A DNA stretch of 64,000 bases, from positions 1,612,001-1,676,000 of the forward strand of contig JBHGNT010000004.1 in NCBI GenBank assembly GCA_043228905.1, in the 5' to 3' direction. This stretch comes from Azolla caroliniana (taxonomy: Eukaryota > Plantae > Polypodiophyta). Positions 1-37,200 of this stretch are shown here, one piece after another. A model generated the notes under the pieces. It saw only the letters and a list, made by a program, of their open reading frames with translations, was not told the origin of the DNA and did no database searches. Positions within the stretch are counted from its first letter, which is position 1; each line of letters begins with the position of its first letter. Position numbers and translations under genes: made by a program.

Positions 1-1974
1 TGGCAAAGATGACAACGGTGTGGACCGTAATTGTGCTTGCCGCGGCGAAAGGGTGGCACCTCCATCAAATGGACGTCAAGAATGCCTTTCTACAAGGCGA
101 ATTAGAAGAGGAGGTGTACATGATACAACCACTCGGCTTCAACTTGAGCACCCATCCGAAAGCTGTATGCCGACTCAAGAAGCCACTCTACGGCACTCTA
201 CGGCCTCAAGCAAGCACCGTGTGCTTGGCATTTGAAGATAACACAATATCTTGATGAAATTGGATTCTATATGTCAAAATCGGACAACTCCCTCTACATA
301 CAAAGCGATTCCGGAAGTCCGATCGTCATCATATTATATGTGGATGACCTAGTCATTGGAGGTGAGCATCTCGTCGAAATCAATAAGGTCAAATCCCTCC
401 TTTCCGACAAGTTCGAGATGACGGACATGAAGGAGCTCCGCTACTTCCTAGGCATCGAGGTAATTCGAACTTTGGCCGGAATCATGATCTCTCAACGACA
501 CTATATCCTCAACTTGTTATACAAGTTCGGAATGGCTGAGTTCAAATATGTGACAACCCCTCTTGATCGCAATCTTAGACTAGATGCGAACTCCGGCACC
601 AAAGTGTGTGAGCCGACTCAGTATCGGCAACTCATCGGGAGTCTCATCTACCTCACAATCACTTGACCTGATCTCAGTTATCCGGTTGGTCTCCTTAGTC
701 AATTCATGCAAACACCACGTGATACTCACTTGGATTGCGCTAAGCGAGTTCTACGGTACGTGAGCGGCACAATGGATTGCGGCATCCTCTACAGGACCAC
801 GATGCCAATATGCCTCGAGGAGTACACAGACGCCGATTGGGCCGGCTACAAAGCTGATAGAAGATCAACCAACGGATTTGTCTTCTCCCTCGACGGTGGA
901 GCAATATCCTTGAGTAGCAAGAAGCAGCCTACCGTCGCTCTTTCGAGTACGGAGGCGGAATACAGGGGGCGCAGCCGTAGCTGCATGTGAAGCTGTATGG
1001 TTCAAGAGGATTTTGAAGGATCTGGGCGTACCCATCAAAGATCCGACTTCCCTTTACTGCGACAACATAAGCAGTATCTATCTGGCTCGGAATGGTGTTC
1101 CATGCACGGACAAAGCACATCGAAGTGCACTATCACTTCATCTGAGAGCGCATTCTAGCTGGCGATGTCAACCTACAACACATTAGCACCAATCTTCAAA
1201 CGACCGACATCTTCACTAAAGCCTTAGGAGCCGACAAGCTATGGCAATTCTTGACCGATCTCGGATTGACGATCCCTGACCTGCCAAGCTTGAGGGGGAG
1301 TACTGAAGACATTACGCAATAACGCGTGGATTCCGCAAACCACGCACACTACGCAATAACACGTGGATTACACAACGAAGCCGTGTGGATTACACAACCG
1401 TGCAACGAAGCCGATCTACCACACAAAGCCGCGAAGAAAGATGCAAGCCGAAGCGCAGACTTTGCAACTACGCACAACGCAAGCTAGAGCACGGATTCTG
1501 CAACTCCGCATAAATGCGAGTCGAAGAGGATTTCGGATATCGTCTGAAACCGACCCAACTTGACCTTGACGGGGCGTGTTGAGAATCAAGCTCAACTTGG
1601 TCTAGTGTGTGAACTCACCTTGAGAGTGAATAGACACTCTAACAGTCAAGAATCACCATTAAGTCACCTCTTTGTATTCTAACATTTAGTATGAGTCATA
1701 GAATCATATTCTATGAAACATAACTTATGAGCTTTCACATTCCCCATGCTCCATGAGCCTTGTAGTTAATGAAGAGAGAGGGTGACTATATAAAGCACCC
1801 TCCTCCCACCTTGTATTGGGTTGAGTCTTTCTCCTTTGTTAACATACTCTTACCTTGCGTATTCTCTGTGTCTTATTCCTTGTCTCTTTCACTCTCTCTC
1901 TCTCTCTCTCTCTCATACACACACATAACTCATATCTCTTCCGCTTCACAAGAATCCATATCCAATTCTTTACA
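1..1974 (+). mobile_element. 3' part of a degenerate Ty1/copia LTR retrotransposon (RT-RNaseH, PPT, 3' LTR)
   Basis: ORF pieces with HQMDVKNAFLQG, LYVDD, YTDADWAG..RRST, SSTEAEY and TKHIEVHYHF, broken by frameshifts and stops. Purine-rich tract at about 1568-1576, then an LTR TGTTGAGAATC...TTCTTTACA at 1577-1974. The 5' half lies upstream of the window. Confidence 0.95.
1577..1974 (+). repeat. copia 3' LTR (398 bp)
   Basis: TG...CA termini and TATATAAA near 1787. Its end matches the LTR end of the related copia at 42750-42766 and 50045-50063. Followed by ATTCC. Confidence 0.9.
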
Positions 1975-4569
1975 ATTCCACATAACTTTCGGAGTTATTG
2001 GCAAAATTCACAGTTCAAGGAATGTATTAATAACTTACCAACGAGTGTCATCGTATCCATTATTGACTTTGTAGAAAACTATACATTTAAAGTTCAAAAT
2101 GAGGTTCAATCAATGCATTGGTACAATGATCAATGTACAATACTTGTACATATTTGCTATTGGAGACAAGATGGTGAGTTACATAAGAAATCAATATTTT
2201 ACATTTCAGATGATAAAAAGCATGATACACTATTTGTTCAACATTGTTTTAAGCTTCACTATGCAGATTTATTGTCTTTAGGGTTTAGCTTTAACCGTCA
2301 TTGGGTTTGGTTTGATGGTGCTGCCTTGTAGTTTAAGGCGGCATGATCGTTCTACTTTATCGCCAGGTAATTTTTAATCCATATGTTTAGTACTTATAAT
2401 GCAATGTCTAAGGAAGTAAGTCTTGTGTTAGTGCATGCATACTAATTATGTTTGTAACTATTCAAATACAGTACTATTCAAATGGATGCATGCATACTAA
2501 TTATGTTTGTAACTATGTTAAGTGTTCTTGATTGATCACATAGTACCATCCTGTCACGTGGATCTGTCTTTATTATCTTTTAATCCATGTGGAGTGTTCT
2601 CCATAGACACATTGTACTGTGTTGTGTGTTGTATCTGTACTAAATTAGTATTTATTGAAGGATGTAAAGTACTCGTCTTGTACTCATAGTATTGGCCATT
2701 CTTAAGAGTTTGTACTAAGTATCTTTTAGTCCATGTTGAGTGCTCTCCATGGACACATTGTATTGTACCGTGTGTTGTATCTATACTAAATTAGTATTTA
2801 TTGAAGGATGTAAAGTACTCGTCTTGTACTCATAGTATTTTCCATCCTTAAGAGTTAGTATTAATTATCTTTAATCCATGTTAAGTGTTCTCCATGGACA
2901 CACTATATTGTACTGTGTGTTGTATCTGTACTAAATCAGTATTTATTGAAGGATGTAAAGTACATGTCTTGTACTCAGTACTGTCCTATATTGAAGAGTT
3001 TGTACTAATTATCTTTTAATCCATGTTGAGTGTTCTCCATGGACACACTGTATTGTACTGTGTGTTGTATCTGTACTAAATCAGTATTTATTGAAGGATG
3101 TAAAGTACATGTCTTGTACTCATAGTATTGTCCTATATTGAAGAGTTTGTACTAATTATCTTTTAATCCATGTTGAGTGTTCTCCATGGACACACTGTAT
3201 TGTACTATGTGTTGTATCTGTACTAAATCAATATTTATTGAAAGACACACGAAGTACATGTCTTGTACTCATAGTACTGTCCTATATTGAAGAGTTTGTA
3301 CTAATTATCTTTTAATCCATGTTGTGTTCTCCATGGACACATTGTATTGTACTGTGTGTTTTATCTGTACTAAATTAGTATTAATGGATGTAAAGTACTC
3401 GACGTCAACAACATAGTACTGTCCAATATTGACGAGTTTGTACTAATTATCTTTTAATACATGTAGAGTGTTTTGCATGAACACATTGTACTATGTTTTG
3501 TGTTGTATCCATACTAAATTAGTATTAATGGATGTTAAGTACAGATGGTTGACAACATAGTACTATTTATCTTTTAATTAGTGTAGAGTGTTCTCCATGG
3601 ATACGTTGTGTTATGCTTCGTTTTGTATTTGTGATTGACAACATAGTACTAATGTTTGTTGGAAACCTGGGATACAAAAGCAGATACTTCTCCTTATTCA
3701 ACATTCGTATGCAATGGAACTACTTCGAGTCTGGACATGGAAAAGGAGAGCATGATGGCGCGGGGGCTCTGATCAAACGTGCCCTTACAAGTGAGCAGTT
3801 GGATAATAATGGTGCTAAGTTACAAAATGCACATGATGTTGTGGAGTGGCTAACATGGAAGATGTCAAATGATGGTAAGAACAGATTGTTTGTTGAGGTT
3901 CGCGCCGATGAGGTCGATAGAACTAAATCATATGGTTGTAAAACCATGAAAGGCACACGAAGCACCCATTGTGTATTAGGGTTTAGCCGCAAGGACACAA
4001 CACAATTGTTACTCCATACTTTATCATGCTTTTGTTCCATGTGTATAGATGAAGCTTGGGAAAAATGCATCAACCTATCAATCGTGGATTCTTGGAAATT
4101 GCAGAAGCTTGAGCCTGAACGACAAGATGATATTGAAGAGGATGCACATTCAAACGATATTGTATACTACAACCAACATCAAGACTTGGCAGTTTTATTG
4201 GAAGTTGGAGATCATTTTGGGGTGCTCAAATCTCCTCAAAATGAAGATTTAGAATACTACTACATTGTGGTGTGCAAGCAAGGAAAGACATTATTGAAAG
4301 AAGTGGTGAGGGATGGCTGGGGCAACATGTTCAACGTTGGTGAGTCTGTCGTGTATGGAAACTATTATGCAAAGTTGCCGTAGTGCAAGAACACATATGC
4401 ATTACTAAAGGATGCACCCATTGCAATAATCTACACTGCTGCCATTCTTGCGATCAAGTTCAATATGACTCAAGCAAAGCACAAGGTTAAGGGATACAAC
4501 ATTGTCTACAAGGTCCCCCAAGAGGTTCATGAGCACATATTAGGGGAGGTCTCTCTGTTTAATGCCTGA
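1975..4569 (+). pseudogene. DDE/D-type DNA transposase, C-terminal part (Sola2-like motifs); 2 exons 1975-2366 and 3684-4569
   Basis: Motifs IDFVENY..QNEVQSMHW, YISDDKKHD, WFDGAAL*FK and WNYFESGHGKGEHDGAGALIKRAL, then LSCFCSMC..C. A GT..AG intron 2367-3683 joins IAR|YFSLFNI in frame. In-frame stops: TAG 2329, TGA 2344, TAG 4381. Superfamily assignment is from recalled motifs only. Confidence 0.75.
2572..3655. repeat. Tandem repeat with a ~146-bp unit, 7-8 copies, filling the transposase intron
   Basis: The TTATCTTTTAATCCATG unit anchor recurs at about 2585, 2731, 2876, 3021, 3168, 3317 and 3459, with a degenerate last copy. Confidence 0.95.
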
Positions 4570-22265: not shown

Positions 22266-25200
22266 TGTCGAATACATGTGTATAATGGACGTATTCACAC
22301 TATCCCGTTTTGGCCATTTATGTAATTAGCATAAAGGGTAGTTGCCCTAAGTCGGTCACTATATATAGTGACCTTGTAACCTTTTTGTAAGGTTGGGTGT
22401 TGTATCATTACGTTGTGCAATAAGAAAGTCTTTTGTGCCTCTCTCTCTCTCTCTCTCTCTCTGTGCACGATCTATGATTCTGTTATACGCAGGTACTCAA
22501 CAGCAATCGAATGCTTCTTGATCTTCCGCATAGACGACCTCATCCCCAACATCTGGTATCAGAGCAGAGGTTCGGCCGTCATCACCGCCTGCACAGCATT
22601 CGGTTCTTCACTTCATCACGGCCTGCACAGTATTCGCGTCATTCGAAGAAAGAGAGAAGAAGAACAAAAACGAGGTTTGCACCTCATCGCGTTAGATCCT
22701 CTTGCTTGGAGTAAGCCATCAGGTTGTACTCTGTTCCTTGTGATCGTAACCGCTCGAGGTGAAATCCCCTTGTGCATCATTGACACGATCGTGCTCCATT
22801 CGGTTAAACGGCATCCGAAGAGGTAATCAAACGCTGCTCGTTGTAACCACTCGGTGCAGATCGGTCTCAAGACAACAACCCCAAATTCGTGCTTCATCTG
22901 GCTGATCGACATTCGGGAGGATCAGTTGGATCCGTCTCTCTCGTTGCTGCAGTCAACCGAAGCAGAATCGGTCCAGATAATCGGTTTCAATAATCGGTAT
23001 TCGGCATATATATCCGAAGCGAACCGGGCTCACTCCGACTCGGCAACATTCGGGAAGACCAGTCGGTTCTATCCCTCAAGCTACCGGAGTCAACTCGAGC
23101 AAGTTCCGAAGCCGAACCGACTCGGGTTCAAATCCGACTAGAACGATATCGGGTGAGCCAACCGGCTGCACTCCAACAAGGTTCGTAGTCAACTCCGAAC
23201 CGAGCTCCGTCAACCGAAACCAAATTTGATGGCATCAACATCCGGCTCGTCAGAAATGAGTCTACGCAAGTTCGATGGATCGAACTTCAACTTCTGGAAG
23301 GAACAAATGCAGGACTATCTCATAGTCAAGGGGCAAATCGATCCCATCGAAAATGAAGAACCTCCAGAAGGATACAAACCAATTGAGTGGCAGAAGCTGG
23401 ACAGAATCGTCCGCGCCACGATTCGGATGCACCTATCGGAATCGGTATATTTTACGGTGCAATCGTGTACGACAGCATTCGAACTGTGGAAAACACTGTC
23501 GGACACTTACGAAAAGAAGGTCGCCGCAACGAAGATGTTTCTGATCCGGCGCCTCTACAACTTGCGGATGAAAGAATCCGATTCGGTTCAAGCACACCTC
23601 AATGAGTACGAAAGCATAAGCTCCCAAATCTCGTCACAGGGGACGGCAATCGAGGATGAACTCAGAGCAATGATACTCATGAGTAGCCTTCCCTCATTAT
23701 GGGAAACTTTCGTCACAACCGTGTGCAACGCGTCAACCACGGCTGTTAAATACTCCGAAGTCACGAGCGCAATCCTGACCGAAGCAGCTCGGAGAAAGTC
23801 TTTCGCCAAAGACTCAACAGACGACGCTTATGTAGTACAAGGTTCGACAGACCGATCGAACATACGAGGAAGAGATTCCTCACGGCCGCCGAACAATCAG
23901 CGAAGACGGAGCCAGTCACGGGATAACCGAATCTGCAACTATTGCAAGAAACCCGGACACATCAAAGCCGACTGCCGCGCACTCAAGAACAAGAACAACA
24001 AGAAGAGTGGCCGGCATGAGGAGATCAATTACGTCAGCTTCTCGGCTGATGTACTACCGGACGACCCGAATATACTGTCAATCGAAAATCCAGTCGGATC
24101 CGAAGTTCTGCTCACGACTGAAGAATCGAGCACATGGCTCTTGGATTCGGGCGCGTCATTTCACGTGACTCCTCATAGATCCCAATTTCGGCAATATACG
24201 ATCCGTCACTCCGACTCAGTTCGAGTCGGCAACTCACAACACTGTGACATCATCGGAATCGGCACAGTAGAGCTCAACCTTGCAGGTGGCTCTACACTTG
24301 TACTTCACAATGTCCGACATGTACCCGAGCTCTCGAGGCCATTGATCTCAGTCGGACAACTAGATGAAGACGGCATTCGTGCCGGTTTTTCTTCGGGAGG
24401 GTGGACACTCCACAGGGGGAACCTCCTGCTTGCTAGAGGACCCAAGATACACTCCCTGTATCCGTTACATGTTACGCTCAGAGAGGGTAACCTGTTTTTG
24501 GTGGATATTCCTGTGTCATCACTATGGCACAGAAGATTAGGACACCTCAGCAAGGCCGGCATCACGCATCTATCTAGAGCCGGATACATCCCCAAACTCT
24601 CCTTCTCCGACCATCAATTCTGCGAGCATTGCCAGTATGGCAAACAAGCAGCCGCATCACACCCGACATCAGCACCAAGAGAAACGAGACCTCTCGATTT
24701 AGTCCACTCGGACGTCTGTGGCCCAATGCCGCATCAGTCTCTTGGCGGTGCCTCTTACTTCGTCAGTTTTATTGACGATTCGACTCGAAAGGTGTGGGCT
24801 TATCCAATTCGCACCAAAGATCGTGTCTTCTCGATCTTCACCGATTGGCTCGCTATGGTAGAAAATCAAACCGACCGAAAGCTGAAATGCCTTCGGACCG
24901 ACAATGGGGGAGAGTTCAAATCCGATGAATTCGTCAAATTCTGCTGACAACGCGGCATCCGACGTGAATTTACGGCACCACACAGTCCGGAGCAAAACGG
25001 GATTGCAGAACGAATGAATCGGACAATCCAAGAAAGGATAGTTTCCATGCTCCAACACTCCGGACTGTCGGATGGCTTCTGGGCAGAGGCTCTACTCACG
25101 GCAGTACACATAATCAATATGTCGCCAAGTAGACCTCTAGGACTTCAAATTCCTCAGGAACTATGGATCGGCAGTAAGCCGAATTACGACAAGCTGAGGA

Positions 25201-27719
25201 TCTTCGGATGCGAGGCGTACACCCTTATTCCGAAAGATGATCGCCGAAAACTTGCACCTCGGTCCAGGAAATGTATTTTCCGTGGATATGGATCCGACGG
25301 CGAAATGGGATACCGACTCTGGGACCCCGAACGCAGACAAATCGTCCGAAGTTCGGACGTTGTGTTCAACGAGTCGGCTATGACTCCATCAGTCGAAAAA
25401 CCGATCGAAGTTCGAAGGGTAACATTTTCCGATGTGCCGACCCTTCAAGAAGGCCCCGCTCTCAACACACGATCAGCTTCACGGGTAGCTGAACCTTACA
25501 CTACCGACTCGGACGACCCCGACTCGGCACAGCAGAACAATCCGCTTTCGGACCATCCGACCTCGATACCCGATGCGACCAGTCCAATCATACCTCGACG
25601 ATCCGAGAGACTGTCGCAACCTCCGGAGAGGTATTCTCCTGGAATTTTCTTCACCGACGCCGGCGAACCGACGTCTTACGAAGAAGCATCGACATCTGTC
25701 GATTCAGCCACCTGGCATCTGGCGATGGAGTCGGAAATGCACTCCATTCGGGCAAACAAGACTTGGGATCTGGTCGAATTACCTAGGAACCGACGTGCTC
25801 TTCCTTGCAAGTGGGTTTATCGACTAAAAGAGACGTCTGATTCGACCACCCCAAAGTACAAGGCCAGATTAGTTGCGAAGGGCTTCCGACAAGAATATGG
25901 CGTCGACTTCGACGAGATTTTTTCACCAGTGGTGAAAATGACAACCCTCCGTTTTCTACTCGGCGTAGTGGCAGCCGACAACTTGGAGCTAATTCAGCTA
26001 GATGTCAAAACAGCCTTCCTCCATGGTGATCTTGACGAGGAAATTTATATGGAGCAGCCAAAAGGCTTTGTGGCAACTGGCCAAGAACATCTAGTCTGCC
26101 GACTCAGGAAGAGTCTATACGGCCTCAAACAGGCACCGCGACAATGGTACAAGAAGTTCGACGACTTCATCCAATCGATCGGCTTCTCCAAAAGCGATGA
26201 GGACCATTGTCTCTTCACCAACACAGCTCAAGATGGATCACCCATCTTCCTCATCATTTACGTGGACGACATGCTAATTTCTGGACGCCACGCGGGCGAA
26301 CTTGCCGATCTCATTCGGCAACTGCGGTTGAAGTTTGCCATGAAGGACCTCGGTCCGGCACGACACATACTCGGCATGAAGATTAGTCGCCATCGCGACA
26401 AACGACATCTTTTTTTGTCTCAGACCGACTATATCGGACGTGTCTTGGAACGCTTCAACATGCAATCAGCCAAATCTGCTTCAACCCCGCTCCCAATGAA
26501 TCTTCGGCTCTCTCAGCGAGACTGCCCGACATCCGGCCCGGAGGGGGAAGATATGAAGTCGGTACCGTATGCACCGGCAGTCGGCTCCCTTATGTACCTG
26601 ATGGTCGCGACACGGCCTGATATTTCTCATGCCGTAGGAGTCGTTAGCAGATTTATGCACAATCCTGGCCGATCGCATTGGAACGCAGTCAAGCATGTGT
26701 TCAGATATCTGGCTGGCACAAAAGACCATGGCATTCTTTTCGGTCCGAACCGAACCTCAGGCGTAGTCGGTTACACCGACTCGGACTTCGCCGGCTGTAT
26801 AGACAGTCGGAAATCAACAACCGGATACTGCTTCAAATTCGGCAATGGAGCAATCTCGTGGAAGTCGAAACTTCAGGAGTGCACAGCGACCTCAACGACC
26901 GAAGCAGAATATGTAGCTGCGTCCGACGCAGCAAAAGAAGCTTTGTGGCTCGGTCAGCTGGCGCACACGTTTCGACAAGTCGACCATGACTCGGCTCCAG
27001 TTGTCTACAGCGACAGTCAAGGTGCTGTTGCCTTGTCGAAAAATCCAGTTCACCACAACGCCTCCAAACATATCGACGTTCGATATCACTTCGTTCGGGA
27101 CTGCGTCATTTCAGGGAAAATCGGTCTAGAGAAAATATCCACAACCGACAATGTCGCAGATGGAATGACCAAGTGTCTTTCGGCAGACCGTTTTCGGTCT
27201 CTTCGGCATCAGATGGGCGTAACGACAAACCAGTCCGGTTAGAGCCGGACACAGAGCAGGATGGTTCCCGACAACCGACATCAGTTCCTTAATGATCAGC
27301 TTCAACTGTTCCGACCCGACCAGTTCGGTCTTCTGCCTTCGGACCCTGCCGACTCGAACAAAGCTGATATGTCCGAGAACCTAAGTCTATACCTGTAATC
27401 TTAGATAACCCATGTATACGCCCATTACGGGGGAGTGTCGAATACATGTGTATAATGGACGTATTCACACTATCCCGTTTTGGCCATTTATGTAATTAGC
27501 ATAAAGGGTAGTTGCCCTAAGTCGGTCACTATATATAGTGACCTTGTAACCTTTTTGTAAGGTTGGGTGTTGTATCATTACGTTGTGCAATAAGAAAGTC
27601 TTTTGTGCCTCTCTCTCTCTCTCTCTCTCTGTGCACGATCTATGATTCTGTTATACGCAGGTACTCAACAGCAATCGAATGCTTCTTGATCTTCCGCATA
27701 GACGACCTCATCCCCAACA
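22266..27719 (+). mobile_element. Full-length, very young Ty1/copia LTR retrotransposon
   Basis: 5' LTR 22266-22551 and 3' LTR 27436-27719, identical except for one CT unit. TSD GGATG at 22261-22265 and 27720-27724. PBS TGGTATCAGAGC at 22554-22565 (tRNA-iMet). PPT at about 27429-27435. Confidence 0.98.
23229..27242 (+). pseudogene. copia gag-pol polyprotein with a single in-frame TGA at 24945-24947
   Basis: Gag (KFDGSNFNFWK, CNYCKKPGHIKADC knuckle), protease WLLDSGAS, integrase (WHRRLGH..CEHC, VHSDVCGP, RTDNGGEF, QNGIAER), RT (YKARLVAKG, YVDD) and RNaseH (TDSDFAG, TEAEY). ORFs 23226-24947 and 25014-27242 share one frame. Confidence 0.95.
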
Positions 27720-30576
27720 GGATGTAGGCTCGAGAATGCAGACCGGGTCTAGATAAGCTCGACAAAGTTTCAACACCCCCGAATTTTAGAGAACCAACTT
27801 TTTGGATTGACAATGCAATCGCACGATCAAACCGAGCACAGAGGATACCATGAAAACCTCAAACCGACAACATTGTGGCTGACAACACTACGGGAATCTT
27901 CGTAATGAATCACATTCAGTGTGGTCGAATATGGTTGGTTTATTTGATTCACATGTATATAATGCCCACGGGCCACAATGGCATATTGTAACATTGTTGA
28001 TGAATGAATCTTTTTCATCTTGTACTTTACCTCTTCCAACACTCTCTTGTAGAATGTTCATAATGACTAAACCCTAACTCTTTTTCTCAACTTCGCTCCT
28101 GTCACATACATCCACACAACACATTGCTTCCACATAAATGATTAGGAAACCCTATTTATTGACATACATACCTTGCATCATATCACCTAAAGGGAACTCT
28201 TCACTATGAGGGCAACATGTTTTTTGCTCCCAACTTAGTCACCAATGAGAACATTTGTTATTGCCGTCATCATGTTTGCTTCATTAATGGCAACGTCACT
28301 TGTGTATCATTTTCTAAGATGAAGATTTGGTTATCATGGTTTTGTTTATACCCACTTGGTAGACATGACTAAAGTATGAATTTTCATATTATCCACCATA
28401 GTGATTGTAGTTCTCCGTTCCTCAAAGAATATGGTTTTAGAGTAAGTCTTAATTGCGAATGGAAGTGTGGTTTGGTTCTTATTAGTATATATGTCATATA
28501 TCTAATGTACTCAATGGTTAGGTCCTATTGAGACCATAATTAGTTTCTTGGTTAGATGACTTGAACAAGAGAGGATAATGAGTGTTCATGGACTCTTGGT
28601 ATACTAGGTTAGCAACTTGAGAGTGCTTGATAACCACTCTCATTCGACTTGCCATCAAGACTTGGGAATACAATGTTCAAGCCCCCACATATAATCTTAG
28701 CGGGAAGATGGAACTATTCCATTTTGAGCATGCATTCGGTGGAAGCACCTTGAGATGACAGAATCCGCTCAGAGAGAAAGCTCAATTCACTAGTTCAATG
28801 TTATCTAGTATGGATATTCCCTCATATAAACATGTTTTATTGTAGGCATTACAATGATTTACTTAGCTCATGTACAATGGTTAGATAATTCACTTGATAT
28901 CGCATTGATTGTTTCACAATTTCAGTTGATCAAATCTTACAAAGTGTTTCCTTGTTCAGTCGAGGTGGACCCACAAGACCAACGAGTCACCGGTTGGAGC
29001 GAGCCCACAATTGAAGACATCCAATGAGGCCAACGAACCAATGATTGAGCTGAACATTTAAGAATAAACTATTGACATCTCCAATGATATGTTATAAGAA
29101 ACACACCACACACCAATATTTGATCTATTTCCTACACATATTACATCTATTTACACTAATAATCAAAATGGTAAACGCACTCTGCCAGATATATATAATG
29201 TGGTATGGTTAATTCACTGGACTTGATAATTATTCCTTATCATCAAATCGTGTTGGTTTGGGGTCCTTTCTCTTTCATTCTTCTTCTTGTGCTTCTTCTT
29301 CTTCCCCAATATTTCCATGTCAAAGCTCAAAACAATGAAGGTAATACAAGATTCTGGATGCCAACATTGTTTATTAACAGTAGATTGATCCCTTAGAAGT
29401 ATCCTTTAATTTGATCCTTACTTTCTCCTCCATTTGATCCCTACTTTGTCTCCATATGATCCGTCATTCAATCCTACTTACTTTCTCTTCCAATCTCCAT
29501 CGTTATTAACCCCATTAGCTAGTTTTAACTTGTTGAGGGCATTAAATCTAATGATTGCTTGCTTCAATTACAGTTCAAGCACTCCTGAGTATTAAAACCG
29601 CAGTTGGGGGTTCAGCTTCAATTATAACATCTTGGGATTGTTCTGCGCCAAATCCTTGCAATTGGACCGGGGTCACATGTTCCTCCTTTAATCGTGTTAC
29701 AGCACTGTAATTTCTCCTTAATTTTCCATGAATCTCTAACTCAATGCTAATTCTGGTTTGCTAATGCTAAAAATATACTATTCATGCCTTCTAATGCTAC
29801 TTATACTCCCTTAATGATAATCACATCTTGTAAGTGCTACTTATGGCTTATTTATAATGTTGAGTACAGCTAATTACATTCTAGTTAACGCTAATAATGT
29901 TCTAATTGTGATCTTCATGACTAATTTTGTTATTTAAATTGTTGGAATATGTCAAGATTTGGTCTACAAGGGACATTACCAAATGATTCCTTCGCTAGGC
30001 CTTACGGCACTAACATCATTGGATCTATATAACAATTCCCTCACGAGTCCTTTGCCATCAATGTCTACTATGACACAATTACATGACTTGTATGTCAAAT
30101 TTAGCCTCGTCATGGATGATAAAAAAATTCTATGCTATTCTTACACGAATCACATGCCCTTCAAATAAAATAATCTTCAAAGAAACCCAACCTTTTGATA
30201 ATTTCTGTTTACACTAATCATAATGCCTTACATTATGATTATATATTGCAGGAATTTATCAATGAATGCATTCAATGAGGAATTTCCAAATGATATACTA
30301 ACTTCTAAGGCCTTGTGCTATTGTAAATCTTTTTGTATCACTTGTTTTAGTTTTTACACCTAAGATTTGATACACATTCACAACTATATGGAAGTCGAGC
30401 TATAAAGATTTTATCATACAACCATTTAGCAATACATAAGGGAATCTATGCCTAATTGAAAGATAAAACAAAATAAATGGAACATGTATTAACATGTTAG
30501 AGGCCTTCAATGTTTCCAAGCACATGTCCAACAACAAATTCCAAGGTGCACTTCTAGAAGAAATATCTGTCTTATT

Positions 30577-32973
30577 TGTCACAAACACACCAAGCGCGGA
30601 CTAGGACGGAACACAGATGATGGGGCTACGAGTGACGGATGAACTTGGAGCTAGATGTGACGAGGCTAGGAACTCTAGATGTTGTGAGCAACATGACGGC
30701 ATGAAGACAAAAATAAAGATCAAGGAGACAAAGATGAGGCGAAACAAGAATACTAGATTGATGTGTCAATGACTGGTGTTGAATCCCTTAAAAGGGACCA
30801 AGGAGGTTACAAGTATTTATACTGTGAGTCGAAGTACATGGATTAGAATATTCGGGAGAATATTCTAGAACCCTCTAGAACCTTCTAATTCTAGAACTTT
30901 CTAAAAACTCCTAGAACTTGAAATAGATAATCTACTAATAATGTACTAAGATATACATAACATGACATATATCTGGATGTGTTGGTTAGAACACAACACT
31001 TGACTATATACAAGAGGTCAAGAGTTCAAATCTTTTTGTCATGTCTGTAACAATATCCTCCCCTTTACGGCCACCTTTTCGAAAGTGTGGTGTAGGGGTG
31101 AGCTGAAAGAGAAAACCAAAGTACGTTGAGGTGTGAGTGACCATGAGCAGTCCTCACCAGAAATAGGAGCATGGGTGAATGCGAGCAACCATGTGTGGTC
31201 CTCACCGGAGACTGGACACCAACATGAGCCTGAGCAACCATGTTCGGTCCTCACCGGAGACTGGAATACCAACGTGAGTGTGAGCGACCATGTGCGGTCC
31301 TCACCGGAGACCGGAACACCAACGTGAGTGTGAGCGACCATGTGCGGTCCTCACCGGAGACTGGAACACCAACGTGAGTGTGAGCGACCATGTGCGGTCC
31401 TCACTGGAGACTGGAACACCAACATGCGTGAACGACCATGTGCAGTCCTCACCAAAGACAAGAACACCAATGGGCGTGAGCGACCATGTGCAATCCTCAC
31501 CGAGAACTGGAACACCAACGGACGTGAGCGACCATGTGCGGTCCTCACCGAAGACAAGAACACCAATGGAAATGAGCGACCATGTGCGGTCCTCACCGGG
31601 AACTGGAACACCAACGAGTGTGAGAGACCATGTACGGTCCTCACCGGAGATGCAAACACCAAAGGGCGTGAGCGATCATGTGCGGTTCTTACCGGAGACA
31701 CAAACATTAATGGATGTGAGCAACCCTACATGGTCCTCACCGGGAACTGGAACACTTGACGACAATGACGACTAGGCAAAGTAGTGTTGATGATGACAAA
31801 AAGAGGGTTGAAGATGATGATGTCGAAGACGAAGCAATGAAGGCAATGATGTTGACAAAGCAACTTTGGAAGCAACGACTTTGACTATGGCAATGATGGA
31901 AGCGGAGAAAGAGATGAAGAGGATAAGAAACATAGAGATCGAGATGTTGAGGTTCTGAAGAAACACAAAGACACATATACAAAGGATGATAGAAAACACA
32001 AAGACTGGGATGAAGGTGATAGGAAACGCAAAGAAAGTGACGAAGATAATAAGAAACGCATAGATAGAGATGAAAACGGTAGGAAACACAAGGAGAAGGA
32101 TAACAATGACAAAAAATGCAAGACAGGGATGTGGAAGATGATAAGAAGTGCAGAGATAGAGATATGACGATGAGAAGAAACTAGGAGATAGAGATGTGAA
32201 GGATGAGAAGAAACTAGGAGATAGAGATGATGATGAGAAGAAACTAGGAGATAGGGATGTGGAAGAGGATAAGAAGCCAAACATAGGGATGATGATAAGA
32301 AATGTAGCGATAGATATGAACTAAAAAACAAAGACAATGAAGAGGAGAAATTAAAAAGACATAGATGACGATGAGAAGAAACTAGCAGATAGAGATGGTG
32401 AGGAAGATAGGAAACGAAGTGATGTTGACGATGGTAACTCTAGAAGCAAGGGCGATGACAAAGACGGGTGATGCTTCCAGTTGGAAGGGATTCAAACTAT
32501 CACAAACACACCAAGCGCGGACTAGGACGGAACACAGATGATGGGGCTACGAGTGACGGATGAACTTGGAGCTAGATGTGACGAGGCTAGGAACTCTAGA
32601 TGTTGTGAGCGACATGACGGCATGAAGACAAAAATAAAGATCAAGGAGACAAAGATGAGGCAAAACAAGAATACTAGATTGATGTGTCAATGACTAGTGT
32701 TGAATCCCTTAAAAGGGACCAAGGAGGTTACAAGTATTTATACTGTGAGTCGAAGTACATGGATTAGAATATTCGGGAGAATATTCTAGAACCCTCTAGA
32801 ACCTTCTAATTCTAGAACTTTCTAAAAACTCCTAGAACTTGAAATAGATAATCTACTAATAATGTACTAAGATATACATAACATGACATATATCTGGATG
32901 TGTTGGTTAGAACACAACACTTGACTATATACAAGAGGTCAAGAGTTCAAATCTTTTTGTCATGTCTGTGTCA
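30577..32973 (-). mobile_element. Non-autonomous LTR retroelement (TRIM/LARD-like, 2397 bp) inserted in RLK copy 2 exon 5
   Basis: Two 476-bp LTRs (30577-31052 and 32498-32973) with about 6 differences. TSD TTATT/TTATC. Minus-strand PPT AAAGGGGAGGA at 31056-31066. No gag or pol inside. Confidence 0.93.
31130..31757. repeat. About 12 tandem copies of a 50-51-bp unit inside the non-autonomous LTR element
   Basis: Unit GAGCGACCATGTGCGGTCCTCACCGGAGACTGGAACACCAACGTGAGTGT, e.g. at 31282, 31332 and 31382. Confidence 0.95.
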
Positions 32974-33166
32974 TTATCCGACCTACAAGAGTTGTGAGCA
33001 TGATAGATTGCTCTCATTACTCCTTTCAATTAAACCATCTAAGAAAACATACATACATACATATACATATACATCAATTCTACGTGGATGAAATATTTGG
33101 AATTAGTAGAGGTAGTGTGGGTTGATGCGTTGAAAATAATACGAATGATAAAATCTCTATGTCTAT

Positions 33167-33240
<74 letters not shown>

Positions 33241-33241
<1 letters not shown>

Positions 33242-34170
33242 ATCAACCGTTTGTATCTCAAAAGATTATACCATTATTTGGGATAAGTTGCAAGAATTAC
33301 TATCTTCGTATGAGTCAATTCCTGATTTAGATGGGGGAGCTCAAAAGGTTGATTGGACGTTTCTTGGAAATAGGAGATTGATTATGATCTCATCAAACGA
33401 TGCTTATCACAAGTTGATTGACAAACATAAGTGGATGGACGAAAGGGTTATAAAGATATGGGGTTTTCATAAGCCCGTTACCTGATGGTTTCATGTGATC
33501 AAGGCAAGTTCATGTTGTCGATTGATGCTATGAGCTAAGGTATTCATTTGGAGAGTTATGGTTGGAGTTTTAACATTGGGGGATGCATTAAAAAAAAGAA
33601 ATATTGCTAGAGGAACGTGTTTCTTTTGTTTTGTGAAATTGGAACATTGTAGCCATTGATTTCTTTCATGCCCGATGGCTATTAAGATGGTTTGGAGGTG
33701 CATCAATTTAGTGTGGATGTCTCTAATTGGAGCAAGAGTATATTCTTTCAATTGGGTTTTGGCCCATATGGAGAACAATAAATCAATGCCTCATTTCTAA
33801 ATTATTTTTGAATTCTTGAGGTATTGGGGGGTATAGTTCAATTGGAATATGGAATGCCTTCACTTTTGATTCACAAGTTGTGATGAGAAAATATGTTGTA
33901 ATTGACAATGCTAGAGAAGTCACAATCTCAACCATTAAGAGAAAGAACTTCTTTTGTAGCAATTGACAATGCTAGAGAAGTCACAATCTCAACCATTAAG
34001 AGAAAGAACTCTACACAATCACATATCATCATATTCGCCATTTGAATTGGTTGTGTAGGGTGGCATTGAGTTTGTAGTCATCGTAGTGTTTAGCTCCCTA
34101 GAAGGGTTCTATACTTTGTAGTAAGTTTTTCATGGTGGTGTTTTTTTCTTTTGTAAAGTTAGTCATTATT
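33241..34170 (+). mobile_element. Degenerate L1-like LINE 3' fragment between (GA)n tracts in RLK copy 2 intron 5
   Basis: C-terminal zinc-finger-like remnant GTCFFCFVKLEHCSH*FLSCPMAIKMVW with a Trp-rich context typical of the ORF2 end. Absent from the same intron in copies 1 and 3. Confidence 0.6.
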
Positions 34171-34206
<36 letters not shown>

Positions 34207-37200
34207 CCAAAATTGCATTTGCAGGTGGCTTGGAAACAACTCACTCACATCCATACCTGAAAGTTTTTCATCTCTTGTTCACTTGATTGTTTTGTAAGCA
34301 CAAATTATTTGATGACAACTCTTTTCAGTTTTTCTTTTTCCATATAGTTGTATGTACTTATAAGAATTGGATGTTTGTTGTTGACATTGTAAAGAACGGC
34401 TCACATGAACAATTTTAGTATGACACTGCCACCAATATGGGGTGTAATATGGGTCAACTTCTCATACTTGGAAGTGATCAACCTACTCTTATTATGAGGT
34501 GCAATCCAACGATTAAGGCTCTCATGCTCTATATACTATTAAGTCATTTCAGTGCATACAAGCCATTACGTAAAGTAATGATTTAAAAGAAGACATGTAG
34601 TCATGGGTGGTAAATGCATACATACCATTATCTTCATAATATTACGGGAGCATATGTATAGTTCTCTCAAGATCAATAATTGTCTTCATCGCATGATTGC
34701 CTAAATAAGCTTTTGTCGAACACTACTTTGTGTGAAGGGACTTGCCCCACTCTAGTTTGTTCTTTTGAGATAGTGAGCCTCGGGTATATCTTCAATTTCT
34801 TATTCAAGTTAAGCATTATGTTGACTAATATCAAACAAAATGAGCTCATTGTAAATCATTATTGATCAATCAATGATGCCCATTATAAGTTGGACCTAAT
34901 TTAGGGTCTTTTAAATAACACAACTTTGAATCAAGAAACATACAATTTAAAATTGTGTATATTGAAGTCTTCTTCTCCTCGACAAGAATTTGAATGATGC
35001 TCACCTAACTGGATCTTTACCAGAAGAGTGGGGAGCTAGCTTAACTAAACTGCAAAGGTTGTATGTATCCATTTTTCCACTTCACTTGATATAGTGAAAG
35101 AAGATTTTATTCTTTTAGATAACCATTGAATGGATTGATTTATGCAATTTTTTTTAATGTCATGAAGATGCAATTTAAAGTTTATTCTACTTCTTAATTG
35201 TATGTAGGCATCTTTATAATAATGAGTTGATAGGATCTATTCATGAGAGTTGGGGACTTGTATGCATAAAAAGTGTTTCTTATTTAAGGCAAAAAAATCA
35301 TGACAACCCAAAAATAACTCGTTACCTATAACTAAGTATCTTATTATATACACATGCAAATGTATAAGAATAAGCTTAGTGGCGTTGTTCCATCCTGGAT
35401 GCAAGATCTCCAATCTGATACTAACAAAATGTAAGACCCGAGCAAAAACTATTGTATGTAGGTTCATGTATACACACACACACACACACACATACGTGTA
35501 CATACTACACATGTAATATACATGTTGCAACATTTTTGTGTACTTACGGATGCTTAATATATGTATGGTATATACATTTCTATATACATGTACAAATGTA
35601 CGTAAATATACATACATAAATTCCTTTTAAAATCAATTTCCTACAAGGACCTTATGAATAGAAATTGTTAAACTTCATACATGGATTGCGGGGACTTTAG
35701 ATGCAATTTCCTACAAGGACCGTGCCTAACTTTCTCTGACGATATCACGTAAGTCATGTGCAAATGCATCATCACTCTTCCCCTAATAAAATATGAGATC
35801 CTATCAAGGGATAAATCATAACACTTCTAACCATTAAAGAGAGTCATTGAAAGTCAAAACAATATGGACATAAAAGTTATGACTATTGAAAGTTGATGGT
35901 TTAAAATTAGATTCCCGAAACTGGATAACAGAAAACTCTAGGAGTATTTTGGTAGCTTTGTCTAGATATATGAGAAACCAAATCCTTGCTCACGTTTGAA
36001 ACAATGATGTGAGAAGGCATAAAATAAATACTGATGTTTGTCCTCAATGATCTAGTTGGAAAGGAAATTGCTTTGATTTAGACTTTGGGGGTCACAAGGA
36101 AGTATACGGAGACAATACAAGTTGTGAGCAATTTCTAAGTTCTTGCAAAGACAATACAAGTTGTGATACATTTCCAAGTAAGCTACTTATTTTTTGCACA
36201 TGGAATTGATCATTTTTAGATTATGATTTGGTGCAATTTTAATATGTAGATTTCAAGTTTTAGTATAATCCTTTTCGATTATAGCATCTAGTACCTTTCT
36301 TTATTATATAGTAGAAATGTCCACGATCCTATCTCCACATGCACACAAAAAAGTAGTAAAAAGATGCTAAATATATTTTAGAGGCTTGTCAAAGGATTAT
36401 TGCTCTTTACAATCTCTTCTCCATAAGATTGCACGTCTTGTATATTTTCAAGCTAGGGAGGAAGAGGTGATACTTTTTTCTTTTCATCTATTGGTAACAC
36501 GTTGGCTTAAACTCAATGTCTTGCAACCAACAACATTGTGCCAATGATCATCGAAGAAACTCCATGTTTGGCAAATAACAAACTTTCATCTTTAAATATA
36601 CCAAATTCTTAATTGTTTATGAGCACTTAAATCTCAAACTTCTTGTATAGAGAAAAAAACCTTTCCTAGAAAAGCAATCGTTGGCTCTGTGCTTGGAGTG
36701 GTGGTGATCTTATGTGGAATAATTTCCTTACTCTGGTGGCTGAAGCCTTTTTCAACATCAAAGGATCATAAGAGACTTAGAAATGATTTGACACCAAACA
36801 AGGCATCTCCAAATTGTATACCTAACCTATATTTTCCTATTCGAGTTTTGGTCTTTTGAGATAGATCAAGATACTGGTGATAGGGAGGTTCCCCCTGGTG
36901 TCAAACGGTTTTCACACAAGGAGATTATAAAAGCCACAAAATCATTCAACAAGGATTGTGAAATAGGAGAAGGTAGTTTTGGAAAAGTCTACTTAGGACA
37001 ACTTGATAATAATAGACAAGTTGCAATAAAAAGGGCCTCCGATGTAAGTTTTCAAGGTATAAAAGAGTTCCAGAATGAAATTATGTTACTTAGTCGGTTA
37101 CACCATCACCATCTTGTTTGGCTTGAAGGATTTTGTGATGACAAAGATGAGTAGGTATATATTATTGTGTATGATGTCTCTAGGTTCTTAGTAATATATA

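Follow-up and report, generated by a model that had tools for sequence, protein, structure and literature searches.

The LTR element and its host gene

The window, by which we mean the whole 64-kb stretch of DNA analysed, includes a host gene for an LRR receptor kinase (LRR-RLK) on the plus strand and, inserted into it, a complete LTR element on the minus strand (Table 1). The gene is recognised from Pfam matches to LRRNT_2 (29555-29707) and to a kinase domain (36792-37151), with a transmembrane stretch near 36650. Its coding sequence can be read as ...FQGALLEEISVL up to 30574, where the element intervenes near the end of an LRR exon, and continues beyond it as ...DLQEL, followed by a GT donor. 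The sequences flanking the element, TTATT and TTATC, form a 5-bp target duplication in which four of the five positions match. An insertion into an RLK exon had been proposed in a first-pass annotation of this DNA, and it is indeed an LRR exon of the LRR-RLK gene that is cut. This copy has also disabled the LRR receptor-kinase gene.

Table 1. Features of the element and of its insertion site, in window coordinates.
Feature	Position	Strand	Remarks
Complete LTR element	30577-32973	minus	2,397 bp, 476-nt LTRs
5' LTR, TG..(C/T)A	32498-32973	minus	476 nt; direct repeat of 30577-31052
3' LTR	30577-31052	minus	476 nt; own copy of the TATA box and own copy of the 11-mer (30779-30789)
TATAAATA octamer (TATA box)	32742-32735	minus	Read from sequence
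U3 arm GGTCCCT	32714-32720	minus	Possible pairing partner of 11-mer nt 2-8
Predicted self-primer AAGGGATTCAA, putative first 11 nt of the RNA	32710-32700	minus	Exact complement of the PBS
Helix extension, 5' arm	32679-32698	minus	RNA nt 13-32
Helix extension, 3' arm	32496-32514	minus	Last 17 nt of U5 plus GT
Primer-binding site (PBS) TTGAATCCCTT	32495-32485	minus	2 nt (GT) past the 5' LTR end at 32498
Leader hairpin directly past the PBS	32440-32480	minus	RNAalifold prediction
Low-complexity internal region, 30-33-nt repeats	31900-32430	minus	Same type in family copies
Tandem array, 48-50-nt units	31183-31699	minus	10.6 copies; array also in family copies
Polypurine tract (PPT) AAAGGGGAGGA	31066-31056	minus	3 nt ahead of the 3' LTR
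Target-site duplication, left copy TTATT	30572-30576	plus	Flank comparison
Target-site duplication, right copy TTATC	32974-32978	plus	Flank comparison
Interrupted LRR exon of the LRR receptor-kinase gene	30467-30574	plus	Exon reading and domain search

When the two LTRs are aligned to each other, 470 of 476 positions are identical (6 differences, 98.7% identity), which bears out the earlier estimate of about 99% and the recent insertion deduced from it. The LTRs start with TG and end with CA, save that the 5' LTR of this copy ends with TA, a C-to-T change with respect to the family. The family LTR end, ...CCGTGACA, is confirmed by variable flanks in public contigs (loose ends at 32506). The polypurine tract is kept as AAAGGGGAGGATAA ahead of the LTR starts in two of the family copies described below (L002 and L020). 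A plus-strand orientation of the element was considered and rejected, because the PPT, kept ahead of the LTR start in L002 and L020, and the TATA box, kept at a fixed spacing throughout the family, fit the minus strand only.

Within the 1,445-nt interior there is no Pfam domain in any ORF, no Rfam family and no tRNA. The first-pass annotation had described the element as protein-free, with an interior of tandem repeats and low-complexity DNA, and both descriptions stand: no Pfam match lies inside the element, and the interior comprises 30-33-nt repeats and an array of 48-50-nt units. All coordinates in that annotation also held when the sequence was read again. Hairpins predicted within the tandem units are no more stable than those of shuffled sequences (z about -0.6). 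With two LTRs, a PBS, a PPT, a target duplication and no coding capacity, the element has the makeup of a non-autonomous LTR retrotransposon, and since it encodes nothing it would be mobilised in trans.

Pairing of the predicted RNA 5' end with the primer-binding site

The proposal under study is that the RNA of this element primes its own reverse transcription. The predicted self-primer AAGGGATTCAA starts 24 nt past the end of the octamer TATAAATA, or 32 nt from it when counted start to start, and TTGAATCCCTT is its exact reverse complement. The 11-nt complement located 2 nt past the LTR in the first-pass annotation is thus exact. Of 20,000 trials with a shuffled LTR, 9 gave a complement of at least 11 nt to some site whose start lay 0-7 nt beyond the LTR (~4.5e-4). 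The absence of a tRNA-type PBS, also claimed earlier, was borne out as well, as the 18 nt that follow the LTR contain no TGG.

As a tRNA-primed control we used a copia element that lies 3 kb away and looks intact, with LTRs at 22266-22551 and 27435-27719. It has a classical tRNA-iMet site, TGGTATCAGAGC, 2 nt past its LTR, and that site has no complement of at least 6 nt to the element's own LTR.

When the RNA between 32710 and 32470 is folded, its 5' end is brought onto the PBS in a duplex that runs beyond the 11-mer. In this extension, the GT spacer is paired with RNA nt 13-14, and the last 16 nt of U5 with nt 17-32. The extended duplex, with arms of 34-37 nt, has a predicted energy of -34.9 kcal/mol, which was reached by 0 of 2,000 shuffles, and no other LTR window comes close to it. 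The pairing of the extension agrees in a single-sequence fold, a duplex fold and RNAalifold.

The limits of the perfect part of the helix are sharply drawn. Complementarity stops exactly at nt 1, the start predicted from the TATA box, and positions -1 and -2 in U3 face C-C mismatches. At the other end, an invariant unpaired C (C12) lies directly past the perfect 11-bp duplex. These 11 bp adjoin the required start of minus-strand synthesis, 2 nt from the LTR end. Two changes specific to the 5' LTR of this copy, at 32696 and 32499, each add a pair to the helix. Neither is taken as evidence for the pairing, as each is a C-to-T change at a CAG site, for which post-insertion deamination is the simpler explanation.

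Conservation and covariation among family copies

Family copies at 24 loci were collected from ENA metagenome contigs by a scan for the LTR-end/PBS junction. Most of these loci were fetched with a pattern that included the standard PBS, so the identity of the PBS in most of the fetched copies is fixed by the way they were selected, and because several contigs are near-duplicates from different samples, the independent copies are fewer than the contigs. Of the 17 copies that retain enough upstream LTR, 16 have the exact 11-mer; the remaining one, L021, has two substitutions. Where the box TATAAATA is kept, the 11-mer nearly always lies 24 nt past it, the exception being L013, which has a 3-nt insertion; L014 is without the box. 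The length of R-U5 ranges from 52 to 246 nt in the family. All 24 loci have non-coding interiors in which a low-complexity region is followed by a tandem array. As all of the fetched interiors are non-coding and of the same type, the non-autonomous design is the normal state of the family and not a one-off deletion.

Public sequencing runs from four related organisms each contain 1,104 to 3,287 contigs with at least 80% likeness to the LTR. Summed word depth on the LTR in these four organisms is 5e4 to 4e5, compared to about 70-120 on unique flank, and the deepest part of the LTR extends from the TATA box to about R+25. Among the best-supported differences listed for the four organisms, no frequent variants fall in 32479-32498 or 32697-32744 save those at 32711, 32696 and 32499, the three positions at which the family majority differs from this copy. 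This absence of frequent variants around primer and PBS suggests conservation. We also see inverted joints at the 11-mer in three contigs, which might be fossils of snap-back cDNA; nothing is concluded from them, because library fold-back artefacts at a rate of 0.1% would give the same depth for a family covered at 5e4-3e5.

The first-pass annotation had suggested looking for covariation between the 5' 11-mer and the PBS, and the outcome was positive in one variant element, L002. There, TATAAATA (1324-1331) is followed after 24 nt by AAGGTGAACAA (1356-1366), and TTGTTCACCTT (1528-1538), 2 nt past the LTR end, is the exact complement of AAGGTGAACAA. Compared to the standard pair, four matching positions have changed on each side, and the changes are compensatory. 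Within the 11-mer, this covariation counts only once, as a single block change within a subfamily. The variant R start is also found in contigs of two other organisms (loose ends at 32702). A mismatched combination occurs in L020, where at 2870 the variant PBS stands behind a standard LTR; this copy is part of a tandem array of the form LTR-int-LTR-int-LTR, and in R-U5 it does not differ from the variant. The simplest reading of the L020 sequence is that the mismatched copy is a recombinant.

Compensatory changes are found in the extension too. A C-G pair is replaced by U-A at alignment pair 27/246 in L011/L017, and in a different subfamily, L002b/L023, the same double change is seen at alignment pair 30/243. 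Pairs were counted in an alignment of 15 sequences (12 distinct rows), with the helix defined from those same sequences: 93.6% of alignment cells pair, compared to 31-44% when the partners are slid by 1-3 columns, and six pairs have changed on both sides, a count that 0 of 500 shuffles match. RNAalifold independently predicts the same ~30-bp helix. The program also places a leader hairpin of 9 pairs directly past the PBS (columns 275-283 with 307-315), in which changes are one-sided only; this prediction is a weak indication that the leader hairpin is conserved. As far as sequence comparison can tell, the primer-PBS pairing is under selection in a plant.

The U3 arm brings a further partner for the primer. 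It has the same sense as the PBS, and by pairing with nt 2-8 of the 11-mer it could form a hairpin at the U3/R border. In L002 the arm changes along with the primer, and the hairpin there has 12 bp (z -6.1).

Proposed priming mechanism and its relation to known systems

We consider it very probable that the element replicates by self-priming of the Tf1 type and that it belongs to a highly abundant, non-autonomous family of fern LTR retrotransposons. Transcription would start ~32 nt past the start of the TATA box, at 32710, and the first 11 nt of the RNA would fold back onto the site 2 nt past the 5' LTR. RNA nt 13-32 would pair with the end of U5, placing the 5' end and the PBS in one ~30-bp helix that closes off R-U5 as a loop, an arrangement seen both in the sequence and in its covariation. 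By analogy with Tf1, RNase H supplied in trans would cut after nt 11, at the invariant unpaired C12, and the cleaved 11-mer would prime minus-strand DNA. Gag, protease, RT/RNase H and integrase would be provided by another element of this genome, autonomous and likewise self-priming.

Predictions of self-priming in plants cover 83% of 1,500 Tcn1 chromoviruses, which were reported from moss and clubmoss only, and, among 203 TAR copia elements, 89% (PMC6317226). As it is predicted for both, the helper could come from either lineage. A Tcn1-type chromovirus is our preferred candidate and probably the right one, Tcn1 being the lineage typical of non-seed plants (PMC6317226). That self-priming is right and the helper is instead a TAR-lineage Ty1/copia element seems rather unlikely to us: copia elements are common in the window, but the only one with readable LTRs and PBS uses tRNA-Met, and a copia element nested in L003 has a degenerate site of the same tRNA-Met type.

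An autonomous copy sharing these LTRs or this PBS was not found in the window or in the 24 fetched loci. The 64-kb window contains no further copy of the LTR, and the RT motifs in it are of copia and LINE type only, with no gypsy motifs. Likewise, the 24 loci contain no gypsy RT motifs and no sense gag-pol behind a family PBS. Coding pieces at some of these loci were rejected as helpers: the gag in L003 belongs to the nested copia element, which has its own LTR, and in L005 and L016 the copia sequence is either antisense or flanking. Two scans of a viral-contig collection found nothing, and neither did a first scan of genome contigs. A second scan of genome contigs gave a single 21-mer match in a Prevotella MAG, which was discounted, as there is no similarity around it and about one chance match is expected.

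Among the closest known systems are Tf1 of Schizosaccharomyces pombe and the Tf1/sushi group of self-primed Ty3/gypsy chromoviruses, where a tRNA PBS is likewise absent and a site directly beyond the 5' LTR is complementary to the opening 11 nt of the RNA (PMC10085805, PMC4600332). Other features in common are a PPT, a target duplication of 5 bp, and pairing between U5 next to the PBS and the part of the LTR that comes right after the primer. The fern element differs from Tf1 in its host, in being without gag-pol, and in having the extra U3 arm able to pair with the primer. To our knowledge, self-priming has been proved experimentally for Tf1 only. In the Tf1/sushi group, self-priming is a hallmark and needs a 'pretzel' of three duplexes, in which the sequences on either side of the PBS each pair with a part of the LTR downstream of the primer (PMC10085805). 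Of these, the fern family has the upstream-adjacent duplex, which covaries, whereas its downstream-adjacent sequence is predicted to form a local hairpin. The predicted structure of the fern RNA is thus one near-coaxial ~30-bp duplex plus a local leader hairpin, compared to the three-duplex pretzel of Tf1.

The Tf1/sushi-Tcn1 clade is characterised by gag-pol with a chromodomain integrase. No Pfam domain is found in the fern element, and as it has no protein to compare, it does not count as a member of the clade on that basis. It resembles Tcn1-clade chromoviruses in its non-seed-plant host, in predicted self-priming and in a 5-bp target duplication (PMC6317226), although Tcn1 elements are autonomous, about 6.4 kb long, carry chromodomains and were reported there only from moss and clubmoss species. 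In the Selaginella element SM-Tcn1, no PBS at all was found (PMC2864245). Like the TAR Ty1/copia elements Houba and Osr-1, the family has a target duplication of 5 bp and is a plant element with predicted self-priming (PMC6317226), but Houba and Osr-1 are autonomous copia elements of seed plants, and no sequence link between them and the fern family was found.

Like TRIM and LARD elements, the fern family has LTRs, a PBS and a PPT without coding capacity, and a high copy number. The TRIMs and LARDs that have been described have tRNA-type PBSs, and TRIM elements are under about 1 kb in length, with LTRs of about 100-250 bp. At 2,397 bp with 476-bp LTRs, the fern element is larger than a TRIM and falls between both classes, and its PBS is not of tRNA type. 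A search of the literature found no description of a non-autonomous self-priming LTR family.

A different reading accepts the helix and denies that it supplies the primer: it would be an R-U5 panhandle serving packaging, dimerisation, export or strand transfer, with some other primer in use. At ~30 bp the helix is far longer than priming requires, there is covariation outside the 11-mer, and the architecture is unlike the Tf1 pretzel (PMC10085805), all of which would suit such a role. However, there is no alternative primer site adjoining the LTR, the sole nearby TGG (at +19) is TAG in roughly half of the family copies, and the perfect part of the helix comprises exactly the 11 nt that adjoin the start of minus-strand synthesis. 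We therefore regard the panhandle as improbable.

Priming by a tRNA or tRNA fragment, with the LTR complement a coincidence, is very improbable. Some copia lineages are known to use half-tRNAs as primers (PMC6317226), and there is a loose likeness between the PBS region and a tRNA T-loop (GTTTGAATCCC), but that likeness is in the sense orientation and not the complement, is gone from the variant PBS TTGTTCACCTT and comes with no tRNA or Rfam match. The complement has a low chance frequency (see above), and if a host tRNA defined the site, the site would not be expected to covary with the LTR.

Returning to self-priming, we tentatively raise one extension of it. The U3 arm, the self-primer and the PBS may constitute a three-part covarying module which, with the ~30-bp coaxial helix that replaces the Tf1 pretzel, would amount to a distinct, regulated form of self-priming. 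The arm would form a hairpin with the primer copy carried by the 3' LTR, or by plus-strand strong-stop DNA, and so mask it, leaving only the true 5' end of the RNA for the PBS. A protein-free family that outnumbers its helper would then exploit this regulated self-priming across several fern species. We offer the three parts of this proposal jointly, as a possibility that is less likely than not to be correct as a whole.

The mechanism of self-priming is already known from Tf1 and predicted in plants, and the fern element is a further case of it. In plants, self-priming has so far been a matter of bulk prediction by pattern matching, to which this family adds compensatory changes both in the primer-PBS duplex and in its extension. 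The reach of the mechanism would be widened to a fern, and to a protein-free family with thousands of copies in several related species. Small, abundant and recently active, with a defined RNA structure as predicted by folding, the 2.4-kb element may offer a convenient model for self-priming in plants.

Host gene and neighbouring retroelements

The table collects features of the window and of related family copies on public metagenome contigs. The apparently intact Ty1/copia element has LTRs of 286 nt that are about 99% identical, a PBS of tRNA-iMet type (TGGTATCAGAGC), and long ORFs for gag-protease-integrase and RT at 23226-24947 and 25014-27242. In the region of the LRR receptor-kinase gene, GA/AG microsatellites are also present past the insertion (33126-34300).

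Features in the window and in family copies (contig positions follow the colon)
Feature	Location	Strand	Description
LRR receptor-kinase gene	29555-37151	plus	LRR exons small and numerous; split by the element
Ty1/copia element, looks intact	22266-27719	plus	LTRs, PBS and long ORFs
Two further copia-type RT remnants	337 and 48782	plus	YVDDL motif
LINE-type RT (one)	41391	plus	YADDVV motif
Hairpin across the U3/R border	32703-32720; L002:1337-1364	minus (window)	U3 arm pairs with primer sequence
Tandem arrays of the element's family	L020:700-3928; L002:1100-3261		LTR-interior-LTR-interior-LTR

R-U5, tandem arrays and interior of family copies

In one family copy (L010:985-1057, minus), R-U5 measures just 52 nt; all of the sequence between the two helix arms has been deleted, and both arms are retained. 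The L020 array combines the standard and variant forms, the latter carrying a four-position compensatory change in primer and PBS. Its middle LTR has the standard primer and is followed by the variant PBS, and the R-U5 of this LTR agrees with the variant subfamily, which places the exchange point inside the first 11 nt of R.

The depth of public contigs drops within window positions 32300-32420: the leader stands at about 6e4, whereas sequence left of about 32347 is covered little more than a single-copy stretch would be. This indicates that the low-complexity interior of the window copy has few close relatives; despite this, the low-complexity interior design is common to the family.

PBS/R-start joints and the U3/R border hairpin

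Three public contigs, all from one run, join the PBS (32484-32496) to the R start (32700-32710) on opposite strands, with the joints falling exactly on the 11-nt overlap. Such joints match the product expected if the 3' end of a cDNA snapped back onto its complementary site, although library fold-back artefacts would look identical at the depth of this family.

Early U3, read in antisense, resembles a tRNA T-arm, with a GTTCGAA-like loop between two stem strands (window about 32936-32954, minus; L002:1112-1135); neither ARAGORN nor Rfam made a call on this stretch.

At the other end of U3, directly upstream of the 11-mer that forms the predicted RNA start, lies an arm that shares the sense of the PBS and is able to pair with the primer sequence. 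The pairing in the window element is GGTCCCT/AGGGATT, and the L002 variant forms a 12-bp stem (-18.6 kcal/mol, z -6.1). As the U3 arm varies along with primer and PBS, there are three covarying sites. The arm could mask the primer copy in the 3' LTR, or it could hinder snap-back of the strong-stop DNA.
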